NCBI RefSeq assembly: GCF_037042905.1
Contig: NC_087263.1
Coordinates: forward strand, 8,680,001-8,744,000
Source: Lytechinus pictus
Lineage: Eukaryota
DNA length: 64,000 bases
Direction: 5' to 3'
Below the pieces are notes generated by a model that was given only the letters and a program-made list of their open reading frames with translations, searched no databases and was not told where the DNA came from. The position numbers and the translations under genes were made by a program. This document shows positions 4,133 through 59,667 of the stretch, in pieces. Every line of letters starts with the position of its first letter. Within the stretch, counting starts at the first letter, position 1.

Positions 4133-5048
4133 GCATAATCGATAAGTGTGCTCCTTATTAAACCTATAGTAGGTTCACCTGTCGACTATAATTCCGTGCA
4201 TGTAATCATCAAAAACTTTGCACAGTGACCAAATTCCACTAAGCGAAGGATTAGTATAGCTTGAAATAAGCAGTCGATTTGACATTGGTCCTTGCAGAAT
4301 TAAATGATAACTTTTCCAGCTATTGTGATGTAACGATCCGATTCATAAATTATGTTGATGGGACATGCGTTGTTTGGCCGAAAGCTGTATGTGTGCTATG
4401 CCATATTAAAATCGACTTTTTCAAAATTATCGTTGACAAGAAGAAGAGAGATATGTATATACTTGGCAATTTCAAAGTACCGTAATGGCACTGGTATTCA
4501 ACCCGTTTGGAGAACTTCCTCAAATATATAGAAATATGGAATTTACCTTAATTTCGGACCTGTCTTATTTCCAAGAGCAAATGCTGGTTATTCTTTTGCG
4601 TTATTTTTTTCTTCAACCCGACGACTGTGTGCGCGTGCGATCAAATTATACGGCGATTGATTTTTGCACTAGTATTCAACCCGTTGGCACTAGTATTCAA
4701 CCTAGCGATGAAATATGGCCCTGTCTCTCAATCTGCTCTTGTCCCATCCGACTATGGACTAGACCATTTGAGATGAGACCAAACAGGGATTAGTCAAAGC
4801 CAGAGACTTACATAGATCTAGATCTAGTTTAGCAATCTAAACCATTTTGAGATTCGCTATTTATCATCACTAGGTTGAATACTAGTGCAATTCAGTGCAA
4901 AAGGTCATCGCCGCATAATTCGATCCTCCGCGCATACAGTCGACAGATTGATAAAGAAAATACCGACAACAGATTACCCTGGAAATAACAAAGTGTATGT
5001 TAAGGTGTAGCTGCCTGCTTACATTTATATATATAATATATATATATA

Positions 5049-5200
5049 ATGATCACAAAAGGTTTAGTAAATGCCGTGGAAATAAAATCGTAGATTTTAA
5101 AAGGAACATAGCTCTCAAAAATGAAAGGTAAAGTCACACTCTTCGTCAGTGCCCATGATGTGACAAAAAAAAGAGAATTCAAAATCCGTTTCTGAAACAG
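5049..5200 (-). mobile_element. Decayed Penelope-like terminal remnant with a degenerate hammerhead
   Basis: Abuts (TA)n at ~5026-5048. Minus strand 5107-5152 reads caCTGACGA-AGAG...TTTT-GAGAGCTA-tg (GAGA in place of GAAA). Confidence 0.4.
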
Positions 5201-5463: not shown

Positions 5464-5904
5464 AGAATGAAAAAACATTCATTATTTGGTTTATATGACA
5501 CCTAGGAATTGATTTTTTTTTCATATGAAATTCATGAATTTCGATGCAAACACGCTCATGCAGTGCGAGTTCGGTCTGTTGATTATTACGTCATTACAAC
5601 ATGCGCACTGCTGGTGCCTGCAGCTGCAGCTGCAGGTGCGCGAGTGCAATGGAGTGCAATGGACAAAATCATATGGATCCTAAATTGCACGGTCGATGAC
5701 GTCATTGCAAAATGGGCTGAATGAACGATATCAAACAACCAATCAAATCACAAGGATGTATCTAGGTGTCATATAAATGTATATATATATATATATATAT
5801 ATATATTGTAAAGAAATGGATGAAGAGAACAAAGGTAGGCGTAGCTTAAATCAAGGTTCCCCAGAGCTATCTACCCTTTGGAAAATTTGGTGATGCCGAA
5901 AAAA

Positions 5905-5976
5905 TGCCTCTGCCGGGAATCGAACCCGGGCCCCCAGCTTTGAACGCCGGTGCCTTAACCACTAGACCACAGAGAC
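5905..5976 (-). tRNA. tRNA-like gene, anticodon UCA (copy 1)
   Basis: Reverse complement of 7418-7489; full cloverleaf followed by T6. Confidence 0.8.
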
Positions 5977-6312
5977 GGGTTAGTGGCTAGGGCGACCCCG
6001 ATCCGATTGACCGTCAGATAGACAGATTTTCGACACCATACCAATTATAATTTCCTTTGTCGGGTGAAGGTGGGTTTTGAACAATGACAAGCCGCCATGC
6101 CTCAGCTGGATCAAATCTATTGCTTCGATACAGTACACGTATGGGAGAAGACATACAAATGTGTAAAGTGATACATGTACAACAGCTTTTGGCAACTCTT
6201 TTTTATTTAAATATTGTAAAGAAATGGATGAAGAGAACAAAGGTAGGCGTAGCTTAAATCAAGGTTCCCCAGAGCTATTTACCCTTTGGAAAAATTGGTG
6301 ATGCCGAAAAAA

Positions 6313-6384
6313 TGCCTCTGCCGGGAATCGAACCCGGGCCCCCAGCTTTGAACGCCGGTGCCTTAACCACTAGACCACAGAGAC
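6313..6384 (-). tRNA. tRNA-like gene, anticodon UCA (copy 2)
   Basis: Reverse complement of 7010-7081; full cloverleaf followed by T6. Confidence 0.8.
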
Positions 6385-7009
6385 GGGTTAGTGGCTAGGG
6401 CGACCCCGATCCGATTGACCGTCAGATAGACAGATTTTCGACACCATACCAATTATAATTTCCTTTGTCGGGTGAAGGTGGGTTTTGAACAATGACAAGC
6501 CGCCATGCCTCAGCTGGATCAAAGCTATTGCTTCGATACAGTACACGTATGGGAGAAGACATACAAATGTGTAAAGTGATACATGTACAACAGCTTTTGG
6601 CAACTCTTTTTTATTTAAATATTGTAAAGAAATGGATGAAGAGAACAAAGGTAGGCGTAGCTTAAATCAAGGTTCCCCAGAGCATCACCAATTTTTCCAA
6701 AGGGTAGATAGCTCTGGGGAACCTTGATTTAAGCTACGCCTACCTTTGTTCTCTTCATCCATTTCTTTACAATATTTAAATAAAAAAGAGTTGCCAAAAG
6801 CTGTTGTACATGTATCACTTTACACATTTGTATGTCTTCTCCCATACGTGTACTGTATCGAAGCAATAGCTTTGATCCAGCTGAGGCATGGCGGCTTGTC
6901 ATTGTTCAAAACCCACCTTCACCCGACAAAGGAAATTATAATTGGTATGGTGTCGAAAATTTGTCTATCTGACGGTCAATCGGATCGGGGTCGCCCTAGC
7001 CACTAACCC

Positions 7010-7081
7010 GTCTCTGTGGTCTAGTGGTTAAGGCACCGGCGTTCAAAGCTGGGGGCCCGGGTTCGATTCCCGGCAGAGGCA
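7010..7081 (+). tRNA. tRNA-like gene, anticodon UCA (copy 3)
   Basis: GTCTCTG TG GTCT-AGTGGTTA-AGGC A CCGGC-GT TCA AA-GCTGG GGGC CCGGG-TTCGATT-CCCGG CAGAGGC A. All four stems pair, A and B boxes are canonical, anticodon at 7043-7045, T6 at 7082-7087. Confidence 0.8.
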
Positions 7082-7087
7082 TTTTTT
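7082..7087 (+). terminator. Pol III terminator (T6) after the tRNA-like gene; present in all four copies
   Basis: TTTTTT directly after the discriminator base. Confidence 0.7.
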
Positions 7088-7417
7088 CGGCATCACCAAT
7101 TTTTCCAAAGGGTAAATAGCTCTGGGGAACCTTGATTTAAGCTACGCCTACCTTTGTTCTCTTCATCCATTTCTTTACAATATTTAAATAAAAAAGAGTT
7201 GCCAAAAGCTGTTGTACATGTATCACTTTACACATTTGTATGTCTTCTCCCATACGTGTACTGTATCGAAGCAATAGCTTTGATCCAGCTGAGGCATGGC
7301 GGCTTGTCATTGTTCAAAACCCACCTTCACCCGACAAAGGAAATTATAATTGGTATGGTGTCGAAAATCTGTCTATCTGACGGTCAATCGGATCGGGGTC
7401 GCCCTAGCCACTAACCC

Positions 7418-7489
7418 GTCTCTGTGGTCTAGTGGTTAAGGCACCGGCGTTCAAAGCTGGGGGCCCGGGTTCGATTCCCGGCAGAGGCA
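7418..7489 (+). tRNA. tRNA-like gene, anticodon UCA (copy 4)
   Basis: Identical to 7010-7081, 408 bp downstream, followed by T6. Confidence 0.8.
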
Positions 7490-8172
7490 TTTTTTCGGCA
7501 TTACCAATTTTTCCAAAGGGTAGATAGCTCTGGGGAACCTTGATTTAAGCTACGCCTACCTTTGTTCTCTTCATCCATTTCTTTACAATATTTAAATAAA
7601 AAAGAGTTGCCAAAAGCTGTTGTACATGTATCACTTTACACATTTATATATATATATATATATATAGGTAGGTAGTATAAATTTATTTATAAATGTATAA
7701 ATATATAAAAAAAAATATAATAATTATTATAACTATTATAATTATCATTTATATTTATAATTATCACCCGTATCAGACATCTGAGCTGGTCATTTACAAA
7801 ACCGTATTTTCCTGTATTTTATTATTATCAGGAAGGGATAGGTATATTGTTTGTATTTTCCTCGGTCTCAATGCGCGTATTGACTTTGCATGCCGAGACG
7901 ACGCAAAATATACCTTTTTTTATTTTCCCTGGTCTCACATCCGGGCCTTTGAGGATGCGAATGAAGTGATACGCTTCATAATGTTCCGCGCACCAACGAT
8001 CTACGTCATAATAAAGACAACGCTGGATCTGGGCGCTTGCAAGTACGTCATAATGGTAAAGTGCAGAGCCTATAGACACTGATATTATCATGACGCAACA
8101 GAACTCTATTCTTAAAAGATATCACTGTTATAATGATTTTTGCTCTAGATATCTGATTTGGATGATAATAAA

Positions 8173-9683: not shown

Positions 9684-9735
9684 TATAGGCGAAAAAATGA
9701 CAAGACGATTTGACGTTGCTGTAGACCACAATTTA

Positions 9736-9770
9736 ATCCGAGCTTTCGGCCTTAGGCTTTCTTCATGGGT
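9736..9770 (-). ncRNA. Minimal hammerhead ribozyme motif (variant core)
   Basis: Minus strand: ccc ATGAAGA AAGCC-TAA-GGCC GAAA GCTC gg. Confidence 0.55.
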
Positions 9771-10585
9771 TCTATTTTAACAAAAAACGAACGAAACATA
9801 TCAATTGTATAGAGGGAGGAACAGGTGGAAATATGGGCATATACATGTACATATATAATAACTGATAATAACATATGTAACAATGACGTCGTACGTATAC
9901 AATATATGCACATACATATACAAATACATACATGCACATACGCATATATATCTATATACATAAATACACTTATACATATATATACATACATATGTACATA
10001 TACACAAACATACACATATGATGTACAAACATGACAAATATATACAAATAAATATATATGTATCTAATGTGGGGTAATTTTACCTGGGTCTTTGGGGTCT
10101 TTCGGGCTGACTCGGAGGTGTGCAGTGTCGTGTGTTCGGTTTCTGGTGTGATATAGAATTCGCGTGACTTAAGTTCATTCAAGTGAAACGGAAAAGGTAT
10201 ATGGTCGAGGTGGAATATAGGTCATTAAACAGTACATTGTTATCACGCCGGTAAATTCGAGAGGTTACATTAGAAAAACTAATTATAATTTATACAAGTA
10301 AATGACCAGTACATTAATTGAAATATATATGTTCACAAAAATATATATCGATGATAACAATGTCTTGTCATTATCGTATACCAAATAGGTTTGATGCGAA
10401 TCAAAGTATAACTTAGTATCGTAAAGAGTATAAGTCGTAAATATAAGTCGTAAATTGTATACGTACGACGTCATTGTTACATATGTTATTATCAGTTATT
10501 ATATATGTACATGTATATGCCCATATTTCCACCTGTTCCTCCCTCTATACTATTGATATGTTTCGTTCGTTTTTGTTAAAATAGA

Positions 10586-10620
10586 ACCCATGAAGAAGGC
10601 CTAAGGCCGAAATCTCGGAT
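10586..10620 (+). ncRNA. Minimal hammerhead ribozyme motif (variant core)
   Basis: ccc ATGAAGA A GGCC-TAA-GGCC GAAA TCTC gg; the first core base is A rather than C. Confidence 0.5.
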
Positions 10621-10723
10621 TAAATTGTGGTCTAGAGCAACGTCAAATCGTCTTGCCATTTTTTTCGCCTAAGTATTTGGTACAAGGCACAGTAGTCATG
10701 TTAAAGAGTGGATGCCTGTTTAC

Positions 10724-10761
<38 letters not shown>

Positions 10762-10809
10762 GAGATCAAGTGTATGGAGAGGGCCGTAGCAAGGTCAATA
10801 CCTGTCTTC

Positions 10810-10843
10810 ATCAAGCTTTCGGGCACATGCCCTTCATCAGGAT
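10810..10843 (-). ncRNA. Minimal type I hammerhead ribozyme motif
   Basis: Reverse complement of 10948-10981. Confidence 0.7.
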
Positions 10844-10947
10844 CGTAGGGTCCGTAAGTATAGTGTGTTGTTTATAGTAAAGTTAAGTGTGAAGTACTTC
10901 ACACTTAACTTTACTATAAACAACACACTATACTTACGGACCCTACG

Positions 10948-10981
10948 ATCCTGATGAAGGGCATGTGCCCGAAAGCTTGAT
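10948..10981 (+). ncRNA. Minimal type I hammerhead ribozyme motif
   Basis: ATC CTGATGA A GGGCA-TG-TGCCC GAAA GCTT GAT: canonical CUGAUGA and GAAA cores, paired stem II, palindromic AAGCTT stem III, 3-bp stem I. Confidence 0.7.
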
Positions 10982-11081
10982 GAAGACAGGTATTGACATT
11001 GCTACGGCCCTCTCCATACACTTGATCTCGAATATAATTATGAAGGAGACCCGTACACGTACATCGCCAAGATTGATCACA

Positions 11082-11137
<56 letters not shown>

Positions 11138-16350: not shown

Positions 16351-16624
16351 AATAATATAATAATGATTATGAGACGCCGATGTATTTCTAGCTTCCTATT
16401 CAATAGCGCACTTCATATTACCCCTGCTGTAGCTCCAGCTGCTAAAGGCGCTTGGTGCATTGAAGGAATTAATCCTGCCGGGTACCCATTCACCTCATCT
16501 GGGTTGAGTGCAGCACAATGTGAACAGATTTCTTGCTGGAGGAAAACACGACGTGGCTGAGATTCGTACCCACGTCGCTCTCATTGAAAGACGAGATTCG
16601 TAACCACTAGACCACGACGCCCCC
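16351..16624 (-). mobile_element. tRNA-derived SINE
   Basis: Head GGGGCGTCGTGGTCTAGTGG...GGGTACGAATC, central ACCCAGATGAGGTGAATGGGTACC motif, (TTA)n-like tail. Confidence 0.8.
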
Positions 16625-40198: not shown

Positions 40199-41885
40199 CG
40201 GAGAATCCTAGTCCGTTTAAAACCCCCTCTGGTAAAGCGAGTTCATTTTGCAATTGCCGAAAATGAAAACACTTAATACGAGTTATGCATTAACGTCGTT
40301 TACCGTTGCCACGACAATTCCATCGCATAATCGCCTCCTTGTGCAAAATTTGAGCCTTTTTCTTATTTCGGTTTTCTCATCGTTAGTGTGTTCATTGAGA
40401 AATCGCAGATAAAAGTGAGACTTAAAAAAAGCAGATGAAAAGCAACTATTTTTCTTGCAAAAAAAAATCTGTAAATAATACATTGATTCTGCAACAGTTA
40501 GGAATCCAGTGACAGAATTGACAACAACTACTATATGTAATCGTTCCTACATATTTTTTTATAAAATGTTATTGTTTAAGTTGTTTCACTTGAAACATTC
40601 TTCCCCCATTAATGTTTGTGTGATCAAGGGATACAATTTTCTGACCAGATGGTTATCATCTCATTTCTAAAGACACATACGGAAATATGATCGCTGATGC
40701 AGGAATGGACATTTGGATGCGCATAACAGTTATCCACCTCCGAGTGTCTGCACGTATTGACAAATTACTTCAATTATTGTAATCTCTTTTAGATTATTTC
40801 AGATAAAATCTTGAGAGACAGTTCGTTTAAAGATACGGAATCCGGAAAAAAAAAACGCGTTATAACCGATCCAGCTGGCATTCAATTATCAGAGCAACGC
40901 TGAAAGCAAAACCCTTGTTTTCAAATTACCGGAATTTCCACTTCTGTCATTGGTTGGTATTATTCGCAAGGCTGAATTGAATTACGGCGCTCAATCTTCT
41001 CGACATTACCCATTCCTTATGTGCTCTATTTCACATTGTTCAAAGAAAATCCCTTTTCCCTCTGGCCTCTTTTACCGTGTCTACAAGTGGTATGGAAAAG
41101 CAAAAAGGTTTTCTTTTGAAAAAGGTACTTGGCTCTGTAGATCTCTGTGGATCTTTTTTAAACAAACAAAGCCCATGGTAGCATAACAATTCCTTATCTA
41201 TTACAAAAACCTAATTCTTGTTATACCTTGAGAATGGCAAATATAAAACCTTATACGACGCAAACGCAGCAAGTGGAAGCGATTTAGGGTTTCAGAATGC
41301 TAAAAAACAGAAAGAAAGAAAGAGAGAGAGGAAAGAGCTGGGGAGGGGGAGACGGAAACGGAGATAGAGAGGAGGGAGGGATGGATGTTTGGATATATCA
41401 ATTTTGAATGGGATTCAGCTAAAACTTGGTGATATGATAATGATACACAGTTAACTTTCCAGACGAGGGTAATTGCAAAAGCTTGTCCATTTCACATGAA
41501 AAGAGTGTACACTGTTAAAAATTTATCCTTAAAATAAAAGAAGTTTCTGAAGCAGAGTCTCGAGAACACCTGTAATCTTACCAGATTGCGTAAAACAATA
41601 AATTATTTCAATTTGGACAAAAAGACCAAAAATGGACTGCTCAAAATCACACAAAAGGTGCATTTTTGCTGTAATATTGTTCCTTTTGTAAGGACATCTG
41701 GTCAAAATTTTGTAGAAAAAGGTAGATAAATTAGTGCTATTAGCTCATTGAAATCACCAATTCAACCATTCTCTCTCCATCACATGTTTTAATTCACATA
41801 TTACAATTCAAAACAGCAATACAATATTTGTTTGATTTAATTTGTCATTCGATAGAATAACTATAAATGTGTGTATGTACAACAA

Positions 41886-44800
41886 AGTATGAGGTAATAC
41901 AAATCAAAATGGATAAGCTTATACCTGTATGATACTCTGCAATGTATGAAGCAATACAAATCAAAAGGGATAAGCTTATACCTACGTGACATTCTGCAAT
42001 GTATGAGGTAATACAAATCAAAATGGATAAGCTTATACCTGTATGATACTCTGCAATGTATGAGGCAATAGGAATCAAATGGGATAAGCTTATACCTGTA
42101 GGATACTCTGCAATGTATGAAGCAATACAAATCATATGGGATAAGCTTATCCCTGTGTGATACTCTACAATGTATGAGGTAATACAAATCAAAATGGATA
42201 AGCTTATACCTGTATGATACTCTGCAATGTATGAGGTAATACAAATCAAAAGGGATAAGCTTATACCAGTATGATACTCTGCAATGTATGATGCAATAGA
42301 AATCAAACATGATAAGCTTATACCTGTATGATACTCTGCAATGTATGAGGCAATACAAATCAAACGGGATAAGCTTATACCTGTAGGATACTCTGCAATG
42401 TATGAGGTAATACAAATCAAAAGGGATAAGCTTATCCCTGTATGATACTCTGCAATGTATGAGGTAATACAAATCAAAAGGGATAAGCTTATACTTGTAG
42501 GATACTCTGCAATGTATGAAGCAATATAAATCAAACGGGATAAGCTTATACTTGTAGGATACTCTGCAATGCATGAAGTAGTACAAATCAAATGGGATAA
42601 GCTTATACCTGTATGATACTCAGCAATGTATGAGGCAATAAAAATCAAAAGAGATAAGCTTACACCTGTAGGATACTCAGCAATGTATTAGGTAATACAA
42701 ATCAAAAGGGATAAGCTTATACCTGTAGGATACTTTGCAATGTATGAGGCAATACAAATCAAAAGGGATAAGCTTATACCTGTATGATACTCTGCAATGT
42801 ATGAGGCAATACATATCAAAAGGGATAAGCTTATACCAGTATGATACTCTGCAATGTATGATGCAATAGAAATCAAACATGATAAGCTTATACCTGTATG
42901 ATACTCTGCAATGTATGAGGCAATACAAATCAAACGGGATAAGCTTATACCTGTAGGATACTCTGCAATGTATGAGGTAATACAAATCAAAAGGGATAAG
43001 CTTATCCCTGTATGATACTCTGCAATGTATGAGGTAATACAAATCAAAAGGGATAAGCTTATACTTGTAGGATACTCTGCAATGTATGAAGCAATATAAA
43101 TCAAACGGGATAAGCTTATACTTGTAGGATACTCTGCAATGCATGAAGTAGTACAAATCAAATGGGATAAGCTTATACCTGTATGATACTCAGCAATGTA
43201 TGAGGCAATACAAATCAAAAGAGATAAGCTTACACCTGTAGGATACTCAGCAATGTATTAGGTAATACAAATCAAAAGGGATAAGCTTATACCTGTAGGA
43301 TACTTTGCAATGTATGAGGCAATACAAATCAAAAGGGATAAGCTTATACCTGTATGATACTCTGCAATGTATGAGGCAATACATATCAAAAGGGATAAGC
43401 TTATCCCTGTGCGATACTCTGCAATGTATGAGGCAATACAAATCAAACGGGATAAGCTTATCCCTGTTTGATACTCTACAATGTATGAGATAGTACAAAT
43501 CAAATGGGATAAGCTTATCCCTGTATGATACTCAGCAATGTATGAGGCAATAAAAATCAAACGGGATAAGCTTATACCTGTAGGATACTTTGCAATGTAT
43601 GAGGTAATACATATCAAAAGGGATAAGCTTATACCTGTATGATACTCTGCAATGTATGAGGTAATACAAATCAAAAGGGATAAGCTTATACCTGTAGGAT
43701 ATTCTGCAATGTATGAGGTAATACAAATCAAAGGGATAAGCTTATACTTGTAGGATACTCTGCAATGTATGAGGCAATACAAATCATAAGGGATAAGCTT
43801 ATACCTGTATGATACTCTGCAATGTATGAGGTAATACAAATCAAAAGGTATAAGCTTATACCTGTAGGATACTCTGCAATGTATGAGGCAATACAAATCA
43901 AAAGGGATAAGCTTATACCTGTATGATACTCTAAAATGTATGAGGTAATACAAATCAAAAGGGATAAGCTTATCCCTGTAGGATACTCTGCAATGTATGA
44001 GGTAATGCAAATCAAACGGGATAAGCTTATACCTGTAGGATACTCTGCAATGTATGAGGCAATATAAATCAAACGGGATAAGCTTATACTTGCAGGATAC
44101 TCTGCAATGCATGAAGTAGGACAAATCAAATGGGATAAGCTTATACCTGTATGATACTCAGCAATGTATGAGGCAATATAAATCAAACGGGATAAGCTTA
44201 TACCTGTATGATACTCTGCAATGTATGAGGTAATACATATCAAACGGGATAAGCTTATACCTGTATGATACTCTACAATGTATGAGGTAATACAAATCAA
44301 ACGGGATAAGCTTATACCTATATGATACTCAGCAATGTATGAGGTAATACAAATCAAACGGGATAAGCTTACACCTGTATGATACTCTGCAATGTATGAG
44401 GCAATACAAATCAAAAGGGATAAGCTTATACCTGTATGATACTCTGCAATGTATGAGGTAATACAAATCAAAAGGGATAAGCTTATACCTGTAGGATACT
44501 CTGCAATGTATGAGGCAATACAAATCAAAGGGATAAGCTTATACCTGTAGGATACTCTAAAATGTATGAGGTAATACAAATCAAAAGGGATAAGCTTATC
44601 CCTGTAGGATACTCTGCAATGCATGAAGTAGTACAAATCAAATGGGATAAGCTTATACCTGTATGATACTCAGCAATGTATGAGGCAATACAAATCAAAA
44701 GAGGTAAGCTTATACCTGTAGGATACTCAGCAATGTATGAGGTAATACAAATCAAAAGGGATAAGCTTATACCTGTAGGATACTTTGCAATGTATGAGGC

Positions 44801-46985
44801 AATACAAATCAAAAGGGATAAGCTTATACCTGTATGATACTCAGCAATGTATGAGGCAATAAAAATCAAACGGGATAAGCTTATACCTGTAGGATACTTT
44901 GCAATGTATGAGGTAATACATATCAAAAGGGATAAGCTTATACCTGTATGATACTCTGCAATGTATGAGGTAATACAAATCAAAAGGGATAAGCTTATAC
45001 CTGTAGGATATTCTGCAATGTATGAGGTAATACAAATCAAAGGGATAAGCTTATACTTGTAGGATACTCTGCAATGTATGAGGTAATACAAATCAAAAGG
45101 GATAAGCTTATACCTGTAGGATACTCTGCAATGTATGAGGCAATACAAATCAAAAGGGATAAGCTTATACCTGTATGATACTCTAAAATGTATGAGGTAA
45201 TACAAATCAAAAGGGATAAGCTTATCCCTGTAGGATACTCTGCAATGTATGAGGTAATGCAAATCAAACGGGATAAGCTTATACCTGTAGGATACTCTGC
45301 AAAGTATGAGGCAATATAAATCAAACGGGATAAGCTTATACTTGCAGGATACTCTGCAATGCATGAAGTAGTACAAATCAAATGGGATAAGCTTATACCT
45401 GTATGATACTCAGCAATGTATGAGGTAATACAAATCAAACGGGATAAGCTTATACCTGTATGATACTCTGCAATGTATGAGGTAATACATATCAAACGGG
45501 ATAAGCTTATACCTGTATGATACTCTACAATGTATGAGGTAATACAAATCAAACGGGATAAGCTTATACCTGTATGATACTCAGCAATGTATGAGGTAAT
45601 ACAAATCAAACGGGATAAGCTTATACCTGTAGGATACTCTGTAATGTATGAGGCAATATAAATCAAACGGGATTAGCTTATACTTGTAGGATACTCTGCA
45701 ATGCATGAAGTAGTACAAATCAAATGGGATAAGCTTATACCTGTATGATACTCAGCAATGTATGAGGTAATACAAATCAAAGGGATAAGCTTATACCTGT
45801 ATGATACTCTACAATGTATGAGGTAATACAAATCAAACGGGATAAGCTTATACCTGTATGATACTCAGCAATGTATGAGGTAATACAAATCAAACGGGAT
45901 AAGCTTATACCTGTAGGATACTCTGTAATGTATGAGGCAATATAAATCAAACGGGATAAGCTTATACTTGTAGGATACTCTGCAATGCATGAAGTAGTAC
46001 AAATCAAATGGGATAAGCTTATACCTGTATGATACTCAGCAATGTATGAGGTAATACAAATCAAAGGGATAAGCTTATACCTGTAGGATACTCTAAAATG
46101 TATGAGGTAATACAAATCAAAAGGGATAAGCTTATACCTGTAGGATACTCTGCAATGTATGAGGCAATACATATCAAAAGGGATAAGCTTATCACTGTGC
46201 GATACTCTGCAATGTATGAGGCAATACAAATCAAACGGGATAAGCTTATACCTGTATGATACTCTGCAATGTATGAGGCAATACATATCAAAAGGGATAA
46301 GCTTATCCCTGTGCGATACTCTGCAATGTATGAGGCAATACAAATCAAACGGGATAAGCTTATCCCTGTTTGATACTCTACGATGTATGAGGCAGTACAA
46401 ATCAAACAGGATAAGCTTATACCTGTAAAATACTCTGCAATGTATGAGGCAATACAAATCAAACAGGATAAGCTTATACCTGTAGGATACTCTGCAATGT
46501 ATGAGGTAATACATATCAAAAGGGATAAGCTTATCCCTGTAGGATACTCTACAATGTATGAGGTAATACAAATCAAACGGGATAAGCTTATACCTGTATG
46601 ATACTCTGCAATGTATGAGGTAATACAAATCAAAAGGGATAAGCTTATACCTGTAGGATACTTTGCAATGTATGAGGTAATACATATCAAAAGGGATAAG
46701 CTTATCCCTGTGCGATACTCTACTATGTATGAGGTAGTACAAATCAAATGGGATAAGCTTATCCCTGTTTGATACTCTGCAATGTATGAGGTAGTACAAA
46801 TCAAATGGGATAAGCTTATCCCTGTGCGATACTCTGCAATGTATGAGGCAGTACAAATCAAACAGGATAAGCTTATACCTGTAAAATACTCTGCAATGTA
46901 TGAGGCAATACAAATCAAAAAGGATAAGCTTATCCCTGTAGGATACTCTACAATATATTAGGCAATACAAATCAAAAGGGATATG
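41886..46985. repeat. 57-bp minisatellite, roughly 89 units
   Basis: Consensus gggataagcttatacctgtatgatactctgcaatgtatgaggtaatacaaatcaaaa; some 56-bp units; the last unit resumes at ~47704-47748 after the MITE. Confidence 0.97.
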
Positions 46986-46990
46986 TTTAA

Positions 46991-47699
46991 CCCTAAAAAG
47001 ACTGGGGGGATTCAGCCCCCCCCCTCGACATTTTTCGCGATAAATCCGCCGCGCGAAATTTTTTGACCGCCTCGCTCGCTGACTTTTTACCTTCAAGTCT
47101 CGCGCAACTTTTGAGACCAAAATTGTGACCCCCGGGACCGCGGTTCCGAAATTACGCAACATTTCGTAAGTGCATGCAGACCCAAATCCAATGCAAATAG
47201 CGTTTTTAACCAAAATTAATAAATGTATCATTATTTTTCCTTTTACTGCTTAAAATCAATTAATATTATCTTTTTTATGGTCTAAATAAAGTCACCGACA
47301 ATTTCCATTGAAAAAACAAAAAACAAAAAGTCGAAAAACAAAGAAATACATAAGAAATTTTGAAAACAATAGAATACATAAGAAAATAAATGTGATGTTG
47401 AAATTTTTTAAAAATAAATTTGATCAGATGCCTATCTAGAGTATGTGAAACAAAAATTAGCATTTCAGGGGCATTATTTTATTAATTAGAGCAAACTTAT
47501 GATTTTTACGCATAAATTAGCATAATTAATGAGACATGAGATTTTTTGCAGAATTTGATGGTATAGTTTTGTAGATAATGCCATGGGTAACACGTGTGCC
47601 AATTTTTGTCGCGAGCGCGCGATCGACGGCCGAGATCATAGGGGCCCCCCCCCCCCCCCCAGTCTTCTTAGGCATCGAAATAGCCCAGTCTATTTAGGG
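46991..47699. mobile_element. piggyBac-type MITE
   Basis: TTAA|ccctaaaaagactggg ... cccagtctatttaggg|TTAA; related single ends at ~52550-52577 and ~54925. Confidence 0.9.
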
Positions 47700-58618: not shown

Positions 58619-59667
58619 CAGGGGCGGCGATCGGCTACGCGGGGGCTGGGGGCACAGTGTCCCCTCCACTTTTGAAGTACTGGTCGAAAAGTGCCCTTTT
58701 TATACACAAGAGAAATGCCCCCTCAGACTTTGAAATGTCCCCCTGTTCCTGAGAAGGCCCCGCTTTACGCCGTTAGCAAGTGCCCTATTTGGCTTCTAAC
58801 AGGCGCCTTTCATGCCCCTGCTTATGCCCCTCACGAAGTGTTCTGTACCCCTTTTACCTCAGAAGGGCCTGTCTTATGTGTTACAAACGTGTTCCCCTTT
58901 ATAACAAAAAAAAAAAATGAAGGAAAAAATTGTAATAATTCTATGTGCGTAAAGTTTAATTAGTCATGTATCTGTTTCTGTATCTGTTTGTGGTAACTCC
59001 CGTAGGAACTCGGCATGACAGCACTTTGCTGGTAAACGCCAAGCTGGTATATATACCAATTACCTATATGAAACTTTTTTTCGTCTAGGTTAATCAGTCA
59101 TAGTGGCTGACGTTATAGACGATATATCACTCTCGGGCCTTTTTATCAAAGTGGAGACAATGGCAGAGTCGGGATTCGAACTCACAACCTTGCGATTATG
59201 AGTCCAATGCTCTAACCACTGGACCACACGACCCGTCATGTGATTGGGGTAGATAAACAGTAGCGTACACATGAGGGGGCTTGGGGGCTCTTCTCCTTCC
59301 CCCCCCAAAAAAAAAAAAAAAAAAAAAATAAAATAAAAAATAAAAATCATGATCGATAAAAAAAATATATAGGAAATGAAAAGAAAGAGGGATGGGTGAA
59401 ATGTATATTTTTTCTGAATATTATGTCAAAATCTATCAGAAAAATTGGATTTCCTTTATAAAATTGTCAAAAATGTTGCTCGCTCACTCCCTTCACAACT
59501 TCTTGTGACGTGATAAGGCATGTCTATCCGCCTCAAATTTTAGCTCATTACATGCACTGTAAATAAATCAATTGCTTTCTTTGTTTTAAGATAGTGCCCT
59601 TTCGAAAAAAATGTGCCCTTGCAGTTCCTGTGCCTCCCCCACTTTTAAGTTCGCTCCGCCGCCCCCG
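58619..59667. mobile_element. hAT-like non-autonomous element with nested inserts
   Basis: caggggcggcg ... cgccgcccccg; 8-bp near-TSD aaggggtg / aagggggc; reiterated tgccc motifs. Confidence 0.55.
59162..59234 (-). mobile_element. tRNA-derived SINE head (3'-truncated)
   Basis: GGGTCGTGTGGTCCAGTGG...GAGTTCGAATCC; acceptor and anticodon stems are poorly paired. Confidence 0.7.

Follow-up and report, generated by a model that had tools for sequence, protein, structure and literature searches.

A dispersed, tRNA-bearing 408-bp repeat family with Penelope-like insertion anatomy in Lytechinus pictus

What kind of element leaves two blocks of tandem repeats head to head in a (TA)n tract, with a complete tRNA gene in its repeat unit, and does that tRNA take part in its propagation? 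These questions are raised by positions 5796–7649 of a 64,000-nt stretch of contig NC_087263.1 of Lytechinus pictus, the window to which all positions below refer. A sequence-only reading had seen here a non-autonomous retroelement mobilised by Penelope-like elements (PLEs), with the tRNA fold as a possible replacement for a ribozyme.

Anatomy of the fold-back and its tRNA

In the assembly, the insertion consists of 2.2 and 2.4 units of a 408-bp repeat folded back head to head, with the following features.

5771–5806, no strand: (TA)n target tract, left flank (TRF period 2, 18 copies; sequence)
5796–6683, minus strand (sense): left arm, 2.2 units, 98% (TRF, 408-bp array)
Left edge of 5796–6683: left arm 3' end, type (a), unit position about 93–101, ...TTTACAATA followed by TATA
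5905–5976, minus: tRNA(UCA), 72 nt, intact cloverleaf (ARAGORN, Rfam); T6 at 5899–5904 (minus strand)
6313–6384, minus: tRNA(UCA), second copy of the left arm (ARAGORN, Rfam)
6682–6683, no strand: head-to-head junction of both 5' ends (sequence, arm mapping)
6682–7649, plus: right arm, 2.4 units, 99% (TRF, 408-bp array)
6684–6710, plus: fold-back loop, 27 nt, plus arm only (inverted-repeat search)
6890–7009, plus: degenerate inverted copy of the tRNA 3' half and trailer, unit position about 209–328
7010–7081, plus: tRNA(UCA) (ARAGORN, Rfam); T6 at 7082–7087
7418–7489, plus: tRNA(UCA) (ARAGORN, Rfam); T6 at 7490–7495
7599–7649, plus: tail, 51 nt, plus arm only (arm comparison, family-wide ends)
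Right arm 3' end, plus: type (b), unit position about 145–152, ...CTTTACACATTT followed by ATAT
About 7646–7668, no strand: (TA)n target tract, right flank (sequence)

The layout first read from the letters, with units in opposite orientation, 5' ends at the centre and a shared GC at 6682–6683, was recovered by TRF and by an inverted-repeat search, which pairs 5796–6683 with 6711–7598 (888 nt, 99% complementary, 27 nt apart). The junction reads CAGA-GC-ATCACC, GC being a 2-nt microhomology common to both arms. Both outer 3' ends do run into (TA)n, and the one-sided tail, previously put at 54 bp, is the 51 nt by which the plus arm is longer, that is, the stretch separating the alternative 3' ends (a) and (b). 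Successive units show a G/A difference that is mirrored in both arms, which speaks against copying from a monomeric circle. Judged from its sequence, the fold-back quite probably arose by a single recent insertion of a high-copy family of non-autonomous retroelements.

The four tRNAs are identical, 72 nt long, with anticodon UCA, and lie inside the unit, each directly followed by T6 and then, downstream, by T5, so that the earlier description of the tRNA as internal, intact and terminated holds for all four copies. The Rfam tRNA model gives 57 bits against a cut-off of 29, and the tRNA at 7010–7081 has a perfect B box and an A box with one mismatch to the consensus. The ARAGORN label "SeC" follows from the anticodon alone; tRNA-Sec was rejected, since about 90 nt, 9/4 acceptor/T stems and a long variable arm would be expected, whereas this is a standard 7/5 cloverleaf with a 4-nt variable region. 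The tRNA is present, with anticodon UCA throughout, in all 102 units sampled. About 30 tRNA variants in the genome have a TCC (Gly) anticodon; they were rejected as the parent host tRNA gene, because the ones checked carry the family leader and are therefore family members. The tRNA(UCA) is probably a captured, integral part of the unit, Gly(UCC)/Glu-like. Its diversity is 0.020 against 0.035 in the rest of the unit, and it contains 2 of 26 shared and 15 of 109 private variants; by none of these measures is its conservation significantly above that of the rest, and they give no sign of selection on it.

In the predicted fold (helix list), the stretch at 6890–7009 pairs with the tRNA and its trailer, so that the RNA forms a rod capped by the tRNA and predicted to be stable (fold z = -7.2). 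This inverted copy aligns locally with the tRNA at a score of 24, against 14.8 +/- 1.9 for shuffles, and we read it as a putative fossil fold-back within the unit. Covariation along the rod (94 kept, 1 compensatory and 150 broken cells) is uninformative, the units being 95–100% identical.

A hammerhead core (CTGANGA...GAAA) is absent from both strands of the unit by regular expression, as the sequence-only reading had also remarked, and Rfam at the gathering cut-off and at E<=10 returned the tRNA alone and no ribozyme. The regular expression, which found its positive control at 10755–11084, was used because Rfam missed the minimal hammerheads of that neighbouring insert. Two inserts lie nearby:

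9687–10727, no strand: inverted-arm insert in (TA)n, one-sided tail of about 54 nt, end ...GTTTACA followed by TTTATATA
10755–11084, no strand: palindromic insert in (TA)n, one-sided tail of about 47 nt, end ...GATCACAC followed by TTATATA

Both had been taken for hammerhead-bearing copies of the same layout. The layout (inverted arms, one-sided tail, (TA)n) stands for both; canonical minimal hammerhead cores, on both strands, were found by regular expression only in 10755–11084, the core in 9687–10727 being degenerate (CATGAAGA...GAAA), and Rfam (E<=10) called a hammerhead in neither.

The family and the Penelope-like elements of the genome

At least 2,180 units genome-wide carry the family leader and the tRNA 5' half, so the unit is not confined to this locus, and other copies repeat the (TA)n and inversion pattern. 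The units are dispersed in tandem arrays at hundreds of loci, with roughly 600 or more insertions in the genome; 182 scored matches among 1,127 candidates lie on many contigs, in arrays of between 0.1 and about 20 units. A search of published papers for the literal unit sequence gave no match. All 18 sampled 3' ends enter (TA)n, at two discrete positions, and the exact junctions are numerous: about 390 matches for (a) and about 250 unique matches for (b), compared with 0–1 and 0 for the reversed-pattern controls. The 3' ends are thus fixed (...ACAATA or ...ACACA(TTT)), whereas the 5' ends are scattered over the unit. Thirteen of 48 mapped 5' ends fall inside the 36-nt tRNA 3' half (p=2e-4; scan-corrected p=0.0175), the first part of the tRNA reached by a reverse transcriptase (RT) copying sense RNA, with an apparent pile-up in the T-arm around A58, and only one lies near the tRNA start.

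About half of the insertions are two-armed, with a tail of 52–59 nt usually on one arm only. One (a) and one (b) end occur in 12 of the 16 that could be classified (p=0.035), and on contigs C1–C3 an outward-facing exact (b) end lies within 1.1 kb of 15 of 50 exact (a) ends. The arms of one insertion are 99.3–99.7% identical, against 95–98% between loci; comparing in-register with shifted arm identity did not discriminate snap-back from independent cDNAs. No empty insertion site was recovered, and target site duplications are unreadable inside (TA)n.

The same genome encodes intact PLEs with RT and GIY-YIG domains (e.g., a 944-aa ORF on the minus strand of locus L043, 6637–9471), which carry a CX4CxxC finger. 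Their copies end at ...CTCATCTCATTAT against (TA)n or, 53 nt further, at ...ATCATCACAC against (TA)n, and the two-armed PLEs at C8:37399488-37403391 and C19:10761353-10768975 have one end of each kind. At another locus (L045), a hammerhead palindrome of the 10755–11084 type adjoins a PLE and a copy of the tRNA element, the three being nested in one (TA)n tract, as in the window. It is this sharing of the (TA)n target, the two 3' ends and the two-armed pattern that makes PLE mobilisation well supported. In sequence, the unit's 3' region and tail showed no significant similarity to a PLE by local alignment against shuffles (z <= 1.7, one PLE family sampled), so the choice of PLEs as partners comes from architecture. 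Going by this anatomy, the 408-bp family is quite likely a PLE-mobilised non-autonomous retroelement, in keeping with the multi-locus, PLE-style element proposed from the single locus. A selenoprotein link between the UGA-reading tRNA and PLE ORFs was also considered and rejected: the intact PLE ORFs contain no in-frame TGA, and the single one seen (L031) can be put down to a plain CGA>TGA nonsense mutation.

A candidate mechanism and its rivals

From these observations we infer an RNA intermediate, the enzyme involved and an order of steps. The family would be copied in trans by the endonuclease-positive PLEs of the genome from a sense RNA longer than one unit. Since Pol III would terminate at the T6 and T5 runs, this RNA probably arises by Pol II read-through of a tandem source copy. 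The GIY-YIG endonuclease would nick the (TA)n tract, whose 3'-OH may then anneal to either of two AU-rich, predicted-unpaired RNA patches, (a) at unit position about 93 or (b) at about 145–152. Reverse transcription would proceed 5'-ward over anything from 0.1 to more than 20 units and could halt anywhere, with a higher chance once the fold of tRNA and rod is reached. Roughly every second event would add an arm of opposite polarity, either primed from the other strand of the target or begun by a template switch at 0–3 nt of microhomology, and the outcome would be a head-to-head fold-back with one arm ending at (a) and the other at (b), their difference in length appearing as the one-sided tail.

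RNA-seq reads over the family make up 0.013% of reads, compared with about 0.11% of the genome. Cover is continuous and even, does not differ between the two mate orientations and extends across junctions with the flanks, so that either read-through transcription or carried-over DNA could account for it. The reads also contain unit-to-unit joints, explicable by tandem DNA, at low cover and in a library type unsuited to circular RNA.

The sequence-only reading had gone further and suggested that the tRNA fold may substitute for the hammerhead, with RNase P/Z cutting a multimeric transcript into monomers. In this view, cleavage by RNase P and/or RNase Z would yield unit-length RNAs, possibly circularised, as templates for transposition. 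The absence of a ribozyme is in line with this, as are the tRNA(UCA) in every sampled unit, the end of the tRNA 93 nt upstream of 3' end (a), a position similar to that of the hammerhead in the PLE pLTR and in hammerhead minis, and the near-identity of units within an insertion, as rolling-circle copying would give. Yet none of the 48 5' ends falls at unit 329 (RNase P site) or unit 401 (RNase Z site), and double cleavage would remove a tRNA that multimeric retrocopies retain uncut. RNase P/Z products (5'-P, 3'-OH) are not known to be substrates for RtcB-type ligation, which also counts against it. RNA-seq reads neither start nor end at the tRNA borders, in libraries that would miss small or circular RNAs, and the lack of significantly higher conservation of the tRNA points the same way. 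We consider this role unlikely; the tRNA as a built-in passenger is the simpler reading, and nothing here shows that the element needs it.

Spread at the DNA level, as a satellite or tandem tRNA-gene array moving by unequal crossing-over, eccDNA reintegration, or rolling-circle or Helitron-like transposition without reverse transcription, would suit the arrays of up to about 20 units, for which later expansion by unequal crossing-over is plausible, and Helitrons likewise prefer A/T dinucleotides. It fits poorly with hundreds of dispersed insertions of 0.1–5 units with fixed 3' ends and random 5' truncation, and with a two-end and tail pattern identical to that of RT-encoding PLEs of the same genome; the unit also lacks terminal inverted repeats. 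A Helitron or Helentron was rejected, as a 5' TC, a 3' hairpin with CTRR and a defined 5' end are absent, the copies instead ending in ...ACAATA or ...ACACA(TTT) with variable 5' ends. We regard spread at the DNA level as quite improbable. That the unit is just a tRNA-derived SINE, with Pol III transcribing it and a LINE moving it, is scarcely credible: an intact tRNA with A and B boxes is what such an element would offer, but here the tRNA is internal with T6 and T5 immediately downstream, the scattered 5' ends do not match its start, the 3' ends are (TA)n junctions with no LINE-like or A-rich tail, and multimers and fold-backs are the rule, all of which bears out the earlier distinction from SINEs. 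Palindromes are known to generate chimeric long reads, so the fold-back could be an artefact of reads or assembly. This is very improbable, as the two-armed layout recurs at many independent loci and in PLEs with differing junction positions, the insertion is bounded on both sides by proper 3' ends of the family in (TA)n, and RNA-seq reads contain opposite-strand joints within the family.

Related systems and meaning of the family

Mobilisation by PLEs, the reading we prefer, recalls several known systems. The twin-priming inversions of L1, reportedly described by Ostertag and Kazazian in 2001, are said to have head-to-head arms, junction microhomology and target priming of both arms. The 408-bp family shares the inverted arms and the microhomology, but each of its arms ends at a defined site inside a multimeric template, the two sites lying about 52 nt apart, and its target is (TA)n rather than an A-rich nick site.

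Closer in form are the metazoan non-LTR retrozymes, short (170–400 nt), non-coding, tandem and dispersed, with structured RNA, and regarded as PLE parasites or as non-autonomous elements derived from PLEs; a type I hammerhead in every unit defines the family, and abundant unit-length circular RNA is expected of its members (Cervera & de la Pena 2020, PMC7229834; Li, Clavereau & Pollet 2026 preprint, 10.64898/2026.07.22.740005). Our family is likewise short, tandem and dispersed with a structured predicted RNA, but it has a complete tRNA gene with T6 instead of the hammerhead, and no similarity to a PLE pLTR (one PLE family sampled). For PLEs, Craig et al. 2021 (PMC8557442) describe partial tandem copies together with an inverted one truncated at its 5' end, a tail confined to one end and a (TA)n preference, and tentatively tie the CX4CxxC finger to (TA)n recognition; non-autonomous multicopy derivatives are known (PMC8557442; bioRxiv 10.64898/2026.07.22.740005). 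The 408-bp family has these traits of endonuclease-positive PLEs and their non-autonomous derivatives, such as MRC1/Chlamys, but it lacks an ORF and its tail measures 52–59 nt against 30–40 nt (PMC8557442). In Chlamys, the non-autonomous elements and their partners are alike at the 3' end (PMC8557442), whereas ours has no detectable similarity to the PLE sampled. With tRNA-derived SINEs and with Helenus and Ajax, tRNA-bearing non-autonomous LTR elements (Kojima 2024, PMC10886601), it shares a small-RNA gene embedded in a non-autonomous retroelement; it differs in that its tRNA is complete, lies inside the unit with a terminator rather than marking the 5' end, and sits in a PLE-type rather than LINE- or LTR-type carrier.

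Known short PLE parasites, the animal retrozymes, are defined by their hammerhead, and a high-copy, recently active family with the same anatomy and no ribozyme would mean that trans-mobilisation can do without the hammerhead. It also offers a compact natural substrate (408 nt, two 3' ends about 52 nt apart) for the unexplained tail and fold-back mechanism of PLEs. There is some small chance that the tRNA domain is a required cis element of ribozyme-free PLE parasitism, or that the seeded UGA-reading tRNAs act in the host. If the former, host tRNA-processing or tRNA-binding factors might, for example, stand in for the hammerhead, or the tRNA-capped rod might direct RT pausing and strand switching; if the seeded tRNAs are expressed, more than 2,000 Pol III-competent UGA-reading genes might alter stop-codon decoding or, as TFIIIC sites, chromatin. 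In any case, the family has spread more than 2,000 opal-reading tRNA genes through an animal genome, all structurally intact and equipped with promoters and terminators for Pol III, and their possible read-through, TFIIIC or insulator effects are worth attention.

The fold-back and its tRNA gene

The sequence-only reading had described the 408-bp unit as 2.2 and 2.4 tandem copies in opposite orientations, and this layout is borne out by Tandem Repeats Finder and by an inverted-repeat search, which gave arms at 5796-6683 and 6711-7598 (888 nt each, 27 nt between them, 99% complementary).

Tandem arrays of the fold-back (Tandem Repeats Finder)
5796-6683, 408-bp tandem array, 2.2 copies
6682-7649, 408-bp tandem array, 2.4 copies

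The junction at 6682-6683 joins the 5' ends of the two arms, and the GC common to both, previously noted as microhomology, is seen there in the sequence. As also described, both outer ends run into (TA)n and only one arm carries a tail, the + arm exceeding the other by 51 nt.

Each arm holds two tRNAs, and all four, as found by ARAGORN and Rfam (57 bits; cut-off 29), are identical, 72 nt long and of anticodon UCA. T6 directly follows every one, so that the intact internal tRNA and terminator of the earlier reading hold for 4/4 copies. The tRNA-Sec identity suggested by the ARAGORN label is ruled out by the cloverleaf, which is of the standard 7/5 form and has a variable region that is short. 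Because the B box is perfect, the A box good and the terminator present, every unit is, in formal terms, a UGA-reading tRNA gene of the Pol III type. ARAGORN called UCA in 102/102 tRNAs from sampled loci; anticodon variants (TCC ~30, TCT ~13, TCG ~6), with the family leader present in the TCC copies checked, hint at a Gly(UCC)-like tRNA ancestor. The majority of family copies, and almost every RNA-seq read, have A at window position 7079 (tRNA position 71; 7077 is listed beside it), which makes a U2-A71 pair; in the window's youngest subfamily the base is G and the pair U2.G71. Both the UCA anticodon and the pairing are retained in a subfamily that differs by G32>A and A38>U in the loop and by C28>U in the stem. 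Weak resemblance (62-68%) to the unit's tRNA part is seen at window 16542-16615 and 59154-59228 and at sampled locus L044:8951-9025; ARAGORN calls no tRNA there, and these stretches may represent either the heads of tRNA-derived SINEs or tRNA genes in decay.

No hammerhead core was found on either strand of the unit, as had been stated, using a regex that, in the neighbouring mini-element at 10755-11084, picks up canonical cores on each strand. The two neighbours do have a layout like that of the fold-back, but the hammerhead ascribed to both is canonical only in 10755-11084 and degenerate in 9687-10727; Rfam reports neither, even at E<=10. A stretch of ~36 nt within window 5000-5050, which shares 86% identity with 10701-10736, the tail of the 9687-10727 element, and has a short (TA)n at its end, is probably a further relic 3' end of that element's family. 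Elsewhere in the window, a minus-strand cluster of overlapping long ORFs (41845-47231, longest 484 aa) gave no Pfam match over the cut-off, only a sub-threshold lysozyme-like one.

A dispersed family with two alternative 3' ends

One unit, searched against the 812-Mb genome, had 182 scored matches among 1,127 candidates, with identities of 88-100%, on many contigs and in arrays from a fraction of a unit up to about 20 units, while a 50-nt pattern of the family leader and tRNA 5' half (<=3 mismatches) occurred in 2,180 places versus 0 in the control. The unit is a dispersed family and not a single-locus repeat. Family members ~97-100% identical were also present in contigs from runs labelled as two other species. 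The longest array (G000:C4:8097489-8104684), of about 17-20 units with identical scores and 96% identity to the window unit, could be a source locus of multimeric transcripts or an expansion after insertion.

Unit ends were mapped at 34 loci, where all 3' ends enter (TA)n at either of two fixed positions, (a) at approximately unit 93, with ...TTTACAATA joined to TATA, and (b) at approximately unit 145-152, with ...CTTTACACA(TTT) joined to ATAT. Genome-wide, the exact (a) junction was found 390 times (0-1 for the reversed control) and the (b) junction about 250 times (0 in the control). The 5' ends are spread across the entire unit. About half of the mapped insertions are two-armed, with the shortest second arms measuring 30-57 nt, and 12/16 of those with classifiable ends have one (a) and one (b) end (p=0.035); on contigs C1-C3, an outward-facing exact (b) end lies within 1.1 kb of 15/50 exact (a) ends. 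Since the arms of a single insertion are 99.3-99.7% identical and loci diverge by 2-5%, every fold-back is a single event. The window copy, with its (a) end on the left and (b) end on the right, is the archetype of the family, its only oddity being two long arms. A SINE was rejected on account of the internal tRNA, the scattered 5' ends and the T6 followed by T5, upholding the distinction already drawn.

The RNA of one unit has a predicted folding energy of -146 kcal/mol (shuffled -106 +/- 5.5, z = -7.2), a stability due to a second, inverted and degenerate version of the tRNA's 3' half and trailer, placed directly upstream of the tRNA (local alignment 24 versus 14.8 +/- 1.9 in shuffles), through which unit ~209-328 is predicted to pair with unit 337-408 plus 1-59. 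On this model the unit is a fossil fold-back in its own right, a rod whose apex is the tRNA. The (a) site would fall where an AU-rich stretch is left unpaired, and the (b) site in and around a weak 4-bp apical hairpin.

Penelope-like elements as the probable mover

The genome encodes Penelope-like elements (PLEs) with reverse transcriptase (RT) and, at the C-terminus, a GIY-YIG endonuclease preceded by a CX4CxxC finger, one ORF being intact (944 aa). A minimal hammerhead lies in their 3' regions, which run into (TA)n, at 15 PLE loci either directly after ...CTCATCTCATTAT or 53 nt further, after ...ATCATCACAC. Two two-armed PLE insertions (C8:37399488-37403391 and C19:10761353-10768975) have one end of each kind apiece, and the hammerhead mini-elements beside the fold-back are arranged alike, their tails measuring about 47 and about 54 nt and likewise ending in ...CACAC or ...TTACA. 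At locus L045 one (TA)n tract contains, in succession, a PLE, a hammerhead palindrome and a tRNA-element fold-back. Across sampled loci L034-L045 (e.g., L045:8443-8522; L043:5317-5380) the alternative PLE ends are exactly 53 nt apart, and the hammerhead mini-elements and the tRNA element repeat the pattern with 47-59-nt tails, all ending in ...ACA(C); this spacing suggests that the PLE integration complex holds a roughly 50-nt 'ruler'.

The (TA)n target, the spacing between alternative ends and the one-sided tail of PLEs have been described (Craig et al., 2021; PMC8557442). In the same work, the 3' ends of non-autonomous Chlamys elements are generally similar to those of their autonomous partners, whereas the 3' region and tail of our unit had no significant match in the sampled PLE. 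The assignment is thus one of architecture: mainly from the common target, the common ~52-nt end spacing and the one-sided tail, the family is quite probably a PLE-mobilised non-autonomous retroelement, and the mobilisation proposed earlier is well supported. In its way of working it is like an animal non-LTR retrozyme or a non-autonomous PLE derivative, although the hammerhead that defines the retrozyme is absent here. The searchable literature yielded no account of a PLE parasite that bears a tRNA gene and lacks a ribozyme.

The template and the role of the tRNA

The 5' ends of long arms are concentrated in the tRNA (17/48, p=0.0025), above all in its 3' half (13/48, p=2e-4; 0.0175 corrected for window choice), which is the first part reached by RT on a sense RNA, a pile-up that fits a folded tRNA or rod RNA template. 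Two independent copies begin at or beside T-loop A58, and one may speculate that m1A58 acts there as an RT block. Pol III is an unlikely source of a template of more than one unit, given the T6 and then T5. A G/A difference between successive units, mirrored in both window arms, argues at this one site for a template that was a linear, heterogeneous multimer and not a monomeric circle.

The earlier suggestion that the tRNA serves as processing signal in the ribozyme's place is not supported and appears unlikely. None of the 48 mapped 5' ends lies at the RNase P site (unit 329) or the RNase Z site (401), and conservation is not significantly higher in the tRNA than elsewhere in the unit, the tRNA's intactness being due to the youth of the copies. 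Two RNA-seq runs, in which the family makes up only 0.013% of reads, cover the tRNA and T6 evenly, equally in both mate orientations and with no preferred starts or ends, in libraries that would miss small or circular RNAs. The conclusion is that the element carries the tRNA as a captured, built-in module.
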